Notes under the pieces: model-generated
Databases searched by the model: none
The model's input: the letters and a program-made list of their open reading frames with translations, nothing else
What the model was told of the DNA's origin: nothing
Part shown: positions 14,161 through 30,469 of the stretch, one piece after another
How positions within the stretch are numbered: position 1 is the stretch's first letter
Layout of the letters: every line of letters begins with the position of its first letter
Position numbers and translations under genes: made by a program
Sequence record: NC_049850.1
Reading direction: 5' to 3' (one strand)
DNA: 64,000 nucleotides

Positions 14161-14271
14161 GATCCTAACTCCGTTTGATTTGTGTTGCGTTGTGTGAATC
14201 GATGTATGAATTATGCCCGCGTCTTTTTGGCCCGTCAACAGTACCCGAGTATTTTAGTCGGGTATTGTGAC

Positions 14272-27881: not shown

Positions 27882-28202
27882 TTATGCGCGGTATATGGAA
27901 ACGAAACCGGGCGTGCGGTCGCGGTCGTCGGCCGCGATGCCGATATGGTAGGCCCCGCGCGCCCCCTCTTTCATACCCTCGCCCACAGCAGCGGACACGG
28001 CGCGACGCGTGATACCGTTATCGATGCGTGCATGCGTGCAACCGTGCGCGACTACCGCGTATTGTACGGCGCGGGCCGCCAGCCAAGCGGCCGGGTGATT
28101 GCCGCTAATCTCGTACAGCAGACGGCCCCGGTACGTGACGCGTGCGGCACGGCCCCCGCGTGTGCCGTGCATTTCGTAGGTTTCAATGGTTGCGGTTTTC
28201 AT
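27882..28202 (-). CDS. hypothetical protein (106 aa), first gene of the leftward early arm
   Basis: AGGGG RBS; TTGTGC-N18-TATAAT promoter 28238-28267. Confidence 0.7.
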   Translation of the reverse strand: MKTATIETYEMHGTRGGRAARVTYRGRLLYEISGNHPAAWLAARAVQYAVVAHGCTHARIDNGITRRAVSAAVGEGMKEGARGAYHIGIAADDRDRTPGFVSIYRA

Positions 28203-28293
28203 GATGCGCCCCTATCGGTTTTGGTTTGGATGCACGCATTATATACAGGCGACGGGTGCGCGCACAATACCCCTAAAAAGTTTTTGGTTTTTG

Positions 28294-28699
28294 TTGACGC
28301 GGGCCCGGAACCGTGTAGAATGGGAACCGGTGAGCAACACGGGCAAACGCAGCCGCGACGCGGTGGGGAACCCGGAGCCCGGCCCCTGCCCGGTCGCGCA
28401 AACGTTTGCGCACGATGCACGGAATACCCGACAAAAACGCTAGGGTACTATTGACGCGACCGCGAATAGGGCGCACAATTCGATTCATGGTGAACGCGAC
28501 GCGGACACCGAACCCGGCCGATTCGGCCAATGTCGAAAAAAGTGAAAAAACTTGTTGACATGCTGCAAATCCGGGTTCATAATGCTTTCCATGGTGACGC
28601 GACAGCGACGCCCCAGCCCCGGACACGGGGTCATCCCGGGGCCCGCGACAGCGACACCCGCGAAAATCGCTTGACGTGCAGGGCCGGGGCCGCTATAGT
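28294..28699 (+). promoter_or_regulatory. four tandem rightward sigma70-type promoters
   Basis: TTGACG-16-TAGAAT (28294-28321), TTGACG-17-CACAAT (28451-28479, dyad 28423-28449), TTGACA-17-CATAAT (28555-28583), TTGACG-17-TATAGT (28671-28699). Confidence 0.75.
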
Positions 28700-28860
28700 G
28701 GCGTCACTGGGCCGAAACGGCTCAGGGCAGGGCGGGGGCCTATCCCGTCTGACGCACTGGAGCCCGTATTGACGATCAAGCACACGACCGCGCACAGCAG
28801 CACCAGCACGACCGTAGCACCCAGCGTCACCCGCGCTCGCGTCTTCTAACGCGACACATA

Positions 28861-28899
28861 GCCTCCCCACGCCCTGAATAAGGGATAGGGAGGCTTTTC
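28861..28899 (+). terminator. probable terminator GCCTCCC...GGGAGGC-TTTT
   Basis: 7-bp outer stem with T tract; long loop. Confidence 0.5.
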
Positions 28900-29001
28900 T
28901 TCGTCCATTTCCCCTTGACATCAAGTTGCTCAATTTTTAGGCAGTCCGAAAATCCCGGCAGGGCAGGGGAGGGCGCTTGCCCAGAAAACCGCCCTTCCCC
29001 A

Positions 29002-29393
29002 CAAAAACTTTTGAGGATTCCGAAATTCTTTCGAAGCACCCTTCCACAAGTTTTTCCTCGGGCAAAAAGTTTCGAAGCCAGTCAAAAACTTTGACCTCTA
29101 AAGCAAAAATAAAAAAGTTTGGACGCATTCAAAGGTTTTGTCAAAAGATTTTGGCGAAATAAAAAGATTTTAGAGAAGCCCATCTAAAAAGTTTCAAACT
29201 ACCAAAATCTTTTGAGTTGCCTCAAAACTTTAAATTTCCCACCTAAAGATTTTCAGTCCGCATCAAAAACTTTTGACGGATTTCAAAAACTTCAATACGC
29301 AGTCAAAATCTTTGGAACGCACCAAAAACTTTTGACGAGTTCAAAAACTTTTGACCGCACCGGTAAGTTTTACCTGTCTCAAAAAGTTTTTGG
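29002..29393. repeat. AT-rich array of about 18-20 near-palindromic units (consensus TCAAAAACTTTTGA), ~20-bp period
   Basis: units start at e.g. 29263, 29283, 29303, 29322, 29341; non-coding. Confidence 0.85.
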
Positions 29394-29497
29394 TGGCGGC
29401 GAAATAATTCGCAACACACTGTTACAATATTTTCGTTGGTACAAATATTTTTCCATGCTATAGTACGCGCACACCAACGGAAATAGGCGTACGAATC

Positions 29498-30469
29498 ATG
29501 AGCGGTATATACAAGATAAGCTTCAACGGCAACAACAAGCGCGACTGCTACATAGGGCAGGCGCAGGATTTCACTGCGCGTATGTACAACCACAGGCACC
29601 ATCTACGCCGGGGGACTCACTTTGCACCCAAGCTACAGCGGGCTTACGACGAGAACGGGCACGAGAACATGCGCGTCGAGATTCTTGAGTTGTGCGAAGT
29701 AGAAGTACTCACCCAGCGCGAGCAGCATTATCTTGATACCATTAAGCCGCGCTACAACCCCACGCTGATTGCATCAGAACCTCCCATGCGCGGAAAAGCG
29801 CATAGCGACGACGCTAAGCAAAGAATCAGCGACGCGGTGCGGAAGTTCAGCCACAAGCAAGAACTGGCGATTGTCAGCAGTCACATAGGGCTTGGATTCA
29901 GCACTACAACCATCGCACTTCAGTTCGGCTGCTCAGAGCCTACAATACGCACAATCCTGCGCAAGCACGGAATCGATACGGGGGCGTCTCGCAGGCCCAA
30001 AGGTAGAGCTAAGAAGGCAGGCCGTAAGGTCAAATTTGACGCGGCTCAGGAGCAGGCCATCGCGCGCAGCTACCAGTCGGGTAAAAGCACTGCTGAGGTG
30101 GCTCAAGAATTTGGCTGCTCCCAACCTACGGTGGTGAAGATGCTGGATAAACTAGGCATTGAGCGCAGGCGTGGCCAGTTCAACGAAACCGAACAACAGG
30201 ACATCGTTCGCCAGTACAAGAATGGCAAGACCACAGAGGACATTGCCGCACAGTATGGATGCAATCACTCCACCATCGGGGACGAGTTGCGCCGGGCTGG
30301 CGTCGAGTTGCGAGGCCGAGGCCGCAAGCGTTTGCTCACGGATAAGCAAGAACGTCAAGCCCTTGCGCTTCGTGACAAAGGCAGGTCAGTCAGTGAAGTG
30401 GCGGCCAAGTTTGGATGCAGTCCGCAGGCAATGCGCAACATTCTCAACAAACACCGGGAGTCCGCATGA
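29498..30469 (+). CDS. free-standing GIY-YIG endonuclease with NUMOD3-like motif and four HTH repeats (323 aa)
   Basis: SGIYKI...CYIGQAQDFTARMYNH...REQHYL...RYN; RGKAHSDDAKQRIS; four FGCS/YGCN HTH units. Confidence 0.9.
   Translation: MSGIYKISFNGNNKRDCYIGQAQDFTARMYNHRHHLRRGTHFAPKLQRAYDENGHENMRVEILELCEVEVLTQREQHYLDTIKPRYNPTLIASEPPMRGKAHSDDAKQRISDAVRKFSHKQELAIVSSHIGLGFSTTTIALQFGCSEPTIRTILRKHGIDTGASRRPKGRAKKAGRKVKFDAAQEQAIARSYQSGKSTAEVAQEFGCSQPTVVKMLDKLGIERRRGQFNETEQQDIVRQYKNGKTTEDIAAQYGCNHSTIGDELRRAGVELRGRGRKRLLTDKQERQALALRDKGRSVSEVAAKFGCSPQAMRNILNKHRESA

Follow-up and report, generated by a model that had tools for sequence, protein, structure and literature searches.

Bacteriophage T7 carries three tandem strong early promoters, A1, A2, and A3, which are recognized by the RNA polymerase of the host. 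The promoter map of this phage is reportedly that of Dunn and Studier, and the entry of its genome driven by transcription is said to have been studied by Molineux and colleagues. The A1–A3 promoters fire at the onset of infection, are located about 0.5 kb from the first-entering end of the genome, and transcribe the early operon, which is 7 kb long and consists of protein genes. At the T7 primary origin promoters 1.1A and 1.1B are followed by AT-rich DNA, and the T4 origins oriF and oriG are also transcription-dependent. Another group is formed by short phage regulatory RNAs synthesized from strong promoters, including lambda oop, P22 sar, and HK022 put. In T4-type phages composite terminator/early-promoter cassettes, designated as PeSL, were described (PMC2839356, PMC4122927).

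The promoter battery considered here belongs to the Burkholderia jumbo phage BcepSaruman (MK552140, 263,735 bp), and the window, the whole stretch of 64,000 nucleotides that was analysed, corresponds to bases 1–64,000 of this genome with 100% identity and the same coordinates. Like T7 A1–A3, the battery consists of at least three strong host-polymerase promoters in one orientation, about 100–150 bp apart and with no gene between them, and it is presumably fired early as well. Unlike the T7 promoters it lies 28 kb from the deposited end, faces away from the early genes, and meets a terminator after 0.2–0.6 kb. Several strong host-type promoters of the same orientation are present, but they neither lie at an end of the deposited record nor read into early protein genes. 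As a whole, the battery varies a design already known from the tandem early promoters of T7.

Genomic setting and the early-arm cassettes

The battery is situated within an unannotated 1,295-bp gap (28203–29497). To the left of the gap there are about 69 small hypothetical genes, all on the minus strand, which form the leftward early arm; to the right there are the plus-strand genes gp070 (a GIY-YIG homing endonuclease) and gp071, followed by minus-strand tail genes. The early arm makes up 10.7% of the genome, and the battery stands at the border between the arm and the rest, facing the remaining 235 kb. Its placement "near the genome end" in the first-pass annotation is loose, since 28 kb (10.7%) of the deposited record lie to the left of the site. 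No tRNA or tmRNA was found within the 64-kb window. In the preprint on phage Matilda (bioRxiv 10.64898/2026.10.21.760668) these phages are grouped beside Ralstonia phage RSL1 and unusual invertible terminal segments are reported, and promoters are not mentioned there.

According to the window scan, the left 28 kb contain about 31 promoters of one shared architecture, on the minus strand throughout. Each cassette is composed, in this order, of an 8-bp A/T-and-CCC stem-loop, TATTG, TTGACG, a 17-nt spacer, TAnAAT, a start region CAY...TCAACG, and a 30–40-nt leader with a ribosome-binding site that precedes the gene, and the consensus of 31 copies (minus strand, 1–28.3 kb) reads AATAACCC, loop, GGGTTATTG, TTGACG. 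The 14-base junction motif of the cassette occurs 20 times in the 263.7-kb genome, always at 1.9–28.3 kb; 19 of the 20 copies are on the minus strand, and the sole plus-strand copy is promoter 1 of the battery. A stem-loop directly upstream of an early promoter, repeated many times over the early region, was thus found, and by this architecture the early-arm cassettes are classed as the PeSL type of composite terminator/early promoter. The likeness to the PeSLs of T4-type phages (PMC2839356, PMC4122927) comprises the stem-loop joined to a host-type early promoter, the about 31 repeats between small early genes, and gene replacement at the cassettes. Elsewhere in the BcepSaruman genome the orientation of sigma-70-like promoters is always that of the genes, and because of this genome-wide agreement the phage evidently relies on the host polymerase.

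An instance of gene replacement is found at gp069 (27882–28202), the first gene of the early arm. In phage Sauron it is replaced by unrelated sequence with a 225-nt gene, and in a metagenomic relative (X1) 281 nt stand in place of 380. The exchanged segment is bounded precisely by the divergent control region on one side and by the next cassette on the other, which is the pattern expected for cassette-mediated swapping.

The four promoters and their conservation

Promoter anatomy, cassette ancestry, conservation, and predicted folds can be read directly from the DNA. Four sigma-70-type promoters on the plus strand were found in a consensus scan, with 9–11 of 12 matches, and all four possess a -35 element close to TTGACA, a spacer of 16–18 nt, and a -10 element close to TATAAT in which the second base is A and the sixth is T. 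The scan yields 8 sites in 5 kb versus 2.0 ± 1.4 in shuffled sequences. The four same-strand sites within 405 bp represent the densest promoter cluster of the 263.7-kb genome, and no four clustered sites appeared in any of 40 Markov-simulated genomes, where the maximum was 2–3. The first-pass annotation, in which four near-consensus promoters in about 400 bp were proposed to fire in the direction opposite to the early arm, is therefore borne out in number, quality, and direction, the early-arm promoters being all on the other strand.

Most of the evidence on conservation comes from L150, a 59-kb contig (JGI 3300076526) found via gp068, the homologue of which is 60% identical in protein. The contig shows about 70–75% nucleotide identity in the shared genes; synteny extends over the whole region between the tail sheath and the early arm, and a gap of 1.2 kb is found at the equivalent place. 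All four promoters are present there in the same order, with scores of 12, 10, 11, and 10 of 12, and their spacing is 153/103/108 bp versus 157/104/116 bp in BcepSaruman. In the alignment the signal blocks are overall 73–96% identical, while the stretches between them reach only 49–57%. Because the conservation is a mosaic of this kind, selection on the signals rather than slow drift is indicated, which argues against dead cassettes.

At its left side the battery is back-to-back with the gp069 promoter (28238–28267, minus strand), which has a -35 element TTGTGC (28267–28262), an 18-nt spacer, and a -10 element TATAAT (28243–28238), followed by a cassette-type leader and the gp069 ribosome-binding site; in L150 a gp069 promoter of equal layout has TAGAAT as its -10 element. 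The divergent pair has in common an A/T-rich dyad (28266–28293; 71% identity to L150), which is the counterpart of the cassette hairpin and is UP-like for promoter 1, and its layout AATACCCC...GG...TTG can be aligned to the consensus of the hairpins that stand upstream in the 31 cassettes of the early arm. The resemblance of this dyad to the unit of the array at 29.0–29.4 kb, which had been pointed out before, is real in BcepSaruman, where the dyad at 28274 agrees with 29381–29394 in 14 of 14 bases, but it is absent in L150. Promoter 1 (28294–28321, plus strand) consists of TTGACG, a 16-nt spacer, and TAGAAT (10/12), with a predicted start at about 28329, and its L150 counterpart scores 12/12. 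Promoter 2 (28451–28479, plus strand; TTGACG, 17 nt, CACAAT; 9/12; predicted start at about 28487) is preceded by a full remnant of the cassette hairpin (28423–28450) and shows a 34-nt match to the cassette at 14233–14266; the corresponding promoter of L150 is TTGACG, 17 nt, TAGAAT.

The two remaining promoters are less similar to the cassettes upstream of the -35 element. A tracts of the UP type bind the alpha subunit of RNA polymerase, and an UP-element-like tract with two phased A tracts (28529–28554, plus strand) covers about -55 to -41 of promoter 3, being identical to L150 in 25 of 26 bases (96%). Promoter 3 itself (28555–28583, plus strand) has TTGACA, a 17-nt spacer, and CATAAT (11/12) and a predicted start at about 28591; its core is 79% and its first 29 transcribed nucleotides are 86% identical to L150. 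Promoter 4 (28671–28699, plus strand; TTGACG, 17 nt, TATAGT; 10/12) is predicted to start at about 28706, and L150 shows 100% identity over the -10 element and the start region of this promoter.

As these likenesses show, the four promoters derive from the recurrent terminator-promoter cassette of the early arm. Promoters 1 and 2 retain a remnant of the stem-loop, as in PeSLs, and only fragments of it are seen at promoters 3 and 4. Unlike PeSLs, which serve as gene separators, the four promoters stand in a row without genes and are oriented on the opposite strand; the stem-loop has been lost at promoters 3 and 4, and A tracts take its place at promoter 3. The leader, ribosome-binding site, and gene that follow a typical cassette are missing, for no frame-conserved ORF is found after promoters 1–3, and a ribosome-binding site, with a frame of 26 codons, is present behind promoter 4 alone. 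No paralogues of the battery or of its transcribed sequence were found elsewhere in the genome.

Between promoters 1 and 2 there is a perfect 16-bp palindrome (28396–28411; GCGCAAAC/GTTTGCGC), a candidate protein-binding site, which is unique in the phage genome and invariant in L150, within a block of 90% identity. The exact 16-mer is frequent in Burkholderiales, and in Janthinobacterium, Collimonas, and Herbaspirillum it closely precedes sugar-binding-protein/ABC-transporter operons; with at most one mismatch, 4–7 copies are present per Burkholderiaceae genome versus 0–1 for the reversed control. Its core AAACGTTT is, as we assume, typical of LacI-family operators, and the palindrome could be a captured host operator. 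Since other copies are found in mixed contexts, and one at a gene 3' end resembles a terminator stem, this reading stays a lead.

In the sister phage Sauron the region 28425–30250 is identical to BcepSaruman except for one base, while the flanks are diverged by about 3.5%, and the identical block includes the homing-endonuclease gene. For these reasons the identity probably reflects a recent exchange rather than constraint, and it fits recent homing with co-conversion. Two further close relatives are represented by contigs from public runs, X1 from an activated-sludge metagenome and X2 from another sample, which match 28254–29054 at about 95–97% identity; gp069 is replaced, and the array and the endonuclease part are without a match. 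No match was obtained in the raw-read run X4. Among 31 IMG/VR loci found via the tail sheath, no counterpart of the battery region was present near the sheath except in Sauron, and in RSL1 the gene order near the tail sheath is different. The scan of IMG/VR with a 14-mer of the cassette returned chance matches only.

The protein P0004 of L150 is recorded on 570 contigs, the longest of 229.7 kb. Some of them are in assemblies labelled Vibrio, Enterococcus, and Staphylococcus, probably by cross-sample carry-over, and the L150 phage may belong to the Matilda-like group.

Predicted transcripts, coding potential, and the downstream array

As there are four starts, no internal terminator, and one shared 3' hairpin, the expected products are nested RNAs with a common 3' end; no hairpin with a U tract was found between the promoters. 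Their predicted lengths are about 573, 415, 311, and 195 nt, with the common end at 28896–28902. The RNA of promoter 4 is predicted to begin with two adjacent hairpins (28707–28750, plus strand; -25.0 kcal/mol, z = -2.7), and the same fold is obtained in L150 (-26.9 kcal/mol), where hairpin 1 has the same shape in spite of a different sequence and hairpin 2 is identical in 25 of 26 bases (96%). A 20-mer of hairpin 2 was matched in IMG/VR only in Sauron, and its five matches in metagenomes include three in unrelated high-GC contigs, one of them inside a bacterial coding sequence, and two that do not align to the battery region. The 12-mer CGCGACAGCGAC occurs twice, at 28598 and 28644, and both the repeat and the two hairpins named in the first-pass annotation are indeed present. 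The G-run motif GGCAGGG is located in hairpin 2 (28726) and again at 28957.

The unit is closed by a compound hairpin (28860–28895) and a U tract (28896–28902), together spanning 28860–28902 on the plus strand (-22.5 kcal/mol, z = -3.55). The hairpin followed by UUUUCUU has the form of an intrinsic terminator in BcepSaruman and confirms the terminator suspected earlier at 28861–28899. In L150 (74% identity) the hairpin is kept and the U tract is weak. A compensatory change in the inner stem of this hairpin, from CCCT/AGGG to CCCC/GGGG in L150, gives anecdotal support to the structure, as the covariation rests on two deep lineages. Since L150 keeps the hairpin without a good U tract, a conserved terminator function is uncertain; with such a poor U tract the transcripts may there mostly enter the array and gp071, by which the main role would shift to that of a leader. 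Rfam gave no match in 28266–28900 at E-values up to 10 (26–31 kb scanned).

The claim of gene-free DNA with at most a 26-aa TTG frame holds in so far as there is no ordinary gene, and the frame exists, one base away from its original placement. It is a plus-strand element (28759–28849) with GGAG at 28759–28762, a 6-nt spacer, TTG at 28769, 26 codons, and TAA at 28847–28849, the frame proper being 28769–28849. The description as gene-free is nevertheless too strict, for the ribosome-binding site, the spacing, the TTG start, and the stop are kept in L150, where the frame has 27 aa. Identity to L150 is 79% from the ribosome-binding site to the TTG and 85% at the frame end, the conserved parts of the peptide being the MTI start and the P.[VI]..AR.F end. 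In the middle the DNA identity falls to 50%, and the alignment contains offsetting -1 and +4 indels. The G+C content at first codon positions is atypical for coding DNA. Because the middle of the 26-codon frame is not conserved, coding is possible but unproven. The distance from the TAA to the hairpin is 9–10 nt in both lineages.

Other frames were rejected. Leaderless micro-ORFs at the predicted starts of promoters 1–3 (37, 23, and 27 aa) are not kept in L150: the frames that begin with ATG or GTG at these starts are broken there by 1-nt indels, and one stop is lost in X1, so that the stretches of promoters 1–3 are regarded as non-coding. CAT or CAC at the start site is a general feature of the cassette. 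An 80-aa frame from 28530 (beginning with MSKKVKKLVD) has its first 24 residues in common with L150, the rest being frameshifted, and the conservation there is better explained by the UP-like tract together with promoter 3. The proposal of nested non-coding RNAs is consequently tenable as to the nesting, which follows from the anatomy, and as to the stretches of promoters 1–3, but the core shared by all the RNAs contains the 26-codon TTG frame.

Behind the terminator, a block at 28903–28999 (plus strand; 71% identity to L150) contains TTGACATC.AGTTGC and then a G-rich long hairpin, which opens the palindrome array. The array (29.0–29.4 kb) is unique, about 400 bp long, has 28–46% G+C, and begins about 100 bp past the terminator, so that promoters are found upstream of an AT-rich repeat region as at origins of the transcription-dependent type. 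L150 shows the same order of elements, from the promoters and the hairpin over the conserved block and the long hairpin to the array. By comparison of the two sequences, the position of the array is kept, while the apparent recognition sequence has changed. The array units of L150 (8270–8660) are longer inverted repeats (AAAAAGTTCACCC, short gap, GGTGAAGTTTT) and those of BcepSaruman are 13-bp palindromes; the G-rich long hairpins at the array start (28949–28999 and, on the minus strand of L150, 8640–8690) also differ in sequence.

A gp071-proximal promoter is predicted at the end of the array in both lineages, at 29436 in the window and at 8261 in L150. In L150 there is no endonuclease and gp071 (57% protein identity) follows directly after the array, which indicates that gp070 (29498–30469) is an insertion between the 29436 promoter and gp071. 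After gp071 there is a strong bidirectional terminator. The genome-wide cumulative GC skew has no turn at 29 kb, the skew here following gene orientation, and a sustained G excess was not found in the transcribed strand of the battery. The minimum of the cumulative skew is at about 101 kb and the maximum at about 234 kb, and both coincide with switches of gene and promoter orientation.

Possible roles of the battery

With a probability of roughly one half, the battery would be a dedicated early unit whose product, a short RNA and/or a micro-peptide, is made in bulk from four stacked promoters. It would be transcribed rightward and early by the sigma-70 RNA polymerase of the host, from four cassette-derived promoters that share a single short target stretch and of which two are preceded by A/T-rich UP-like sequence. 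The promoter-4 RNA would be the shared core of the nested set; its two stable 5' hairpins would probably protect the 5' end and would be followed by the ribosome-binding site, the 26-codon TTG frame, and, 10 nt later, the terminator. The output, an RNA and/or a tiny peptide, would appear in very large amounts right after infection, and transcripts escaping the terminator would cross the palindrome array toward gp071. Transcription, its timing, translation, and the role of the product are what we infer from these elements. Outside the early arm, early transcription is probably heaviest at the battery, which has no ordinary protein product.

As a more specific and rather doubtful suggestion, the promoter-4 RNA could be an undescribed early regulatory RNA of the phage, acting either in cis, as a put-like anti-terminator across the array, or in trans, as a sponge or decoy for a host factor. 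The features which would agree with such a function are the two invariant 5' hairpins, the conserved GGAG-TTG segment, the hairpin end, and the four stacked promoters, and the palindrome between promoters 1 and 2 might couple the output of the RNA to the metabolic state of the host. The predicted transcript is short, structured, terminator-closed, and early like the oop, sar, and put RNAs, and its two adjacent hairpins just past the start recall HK022 put. It differs from them in that neither sequence nor Rfam similarity is seen, no target gene overlaps it on the other strand, and it is served by four promoters rather than by one.

Several other roles should be weighed against the dedicated unit. 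The battery could drive transcription to the AT-rich array, opening it or leaving an RNA primer or R-loop, and thereby activate or prime an origin. As at the T7 primary origin and at T4 oriF and oriG, a gene-free stretch that is AT-rich and bears repeats is directly preceded by tandem promoters; the strong promoters face a unique 400-bp array that begins about 100 bp past the terminator, and the overall layout is kept in L150 although the array units differ. Unlike those origins, a hairpin terminator separates the battery from the array and the GC skew does not turn at 29 kb, its turns being found, in keeping with gene orientation, at about 101 and 234 kb; moreover, the transcribed strand is without the sustained G excess that would favour R-loops, which makes this a possible but not a likely role. 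The four promoters may also be early promoters of gp071 (and of the inserted gp070 in BcepSaruman) with a long leader, a role to which the L150 hairpin without a good U tract would be suited, with the hairpin as an attenuator that is possibly relieved by translation of the 26-codon frame, since its stop is located 10 nt before the stem. That stop-to-stem distance is kept at 9–10 nt, gp071 is the only conserved rightward gene (57%) and stands directly after the array in L150, and the strong bidirectional terminator ends the unit after it; this reading nonetheless appears unlikely, as gp071 has its own predicted promoter in both lineages, a leader of 1.1 kb would be needed that passes through an array presumably bound by protein, and the terminator of BcepSaruman looks efficient. 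The same terminator, 200–570 nt downstream, would halt a DNA-entry motor that, like T7 A1–A3, pulls the genome in after the 28-kb early arm, a role to which the position at the arm border facing the remaining 235 kb would be suited. The densest promoter cluster in the genome might also act as an RNA-polymerase sink that starves host genes; as conserved RNA structures and a ribosome-binding site are needless for a sink, we hold sink and motor alike to be very unlikely.

The least probable explanations deny the battery its own function or assign the locus to the other strand. Gene deletion by recombination between repeated cassettes was shown for tandem PeSLs of T4-type phages (PMC2839356, PMC4122927), and the four promoters might in the same way be functionless leftovers of early-gene cassettes whose genes were deleted. 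Promoters 1 and 2 retain the cassette hairpin, the units of promoters 1–3 look like diverged duplicates, and the neighbouring gp069 is replaced in Sauron and X1. Debris, however, would not retain four intact -35/-10 pairs and the UP-like tract, and order, spacing, and signal blocks have survived a nucleotide divergence of about 30%, whereas the intervening stretches have fallen by drift to about 50%; decay is accordingly judged highly improbable. Finally, a minus-strand frame (28830–28693; 45 aa with a hydrophobic start) could be the real gene, the plus-strand RNAs being antisense to it as in type I toxin-antitoxin systems. Neither lineage has a stop within it (45 and 49 aa), and the stretches IVN, DGIGPRPA, and PVTPL are common to both, but these residues fall exactly in DNA blocks of 100% identity without synonymous change, L150 does not retain the hydrophobic segment, and neither a leftward promoter nor a convincing ribosome-binding site is present upstream, which leaves such a gene barely credible.

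The RSL1-related jumbo phages are poorly understood and their early programme is unmapped, and the battery adjoins the only candidate origin-like array of the genome. The conservation map tells experimenters which bases to mutate, and the battery would supply a compact and very strong promoter module for Burkholderia. Once the product is identified as a regulatory RNA, a micro-protein, a primer for replication, or no more than a leader, it would become clear how phages of this kind begin an infection.
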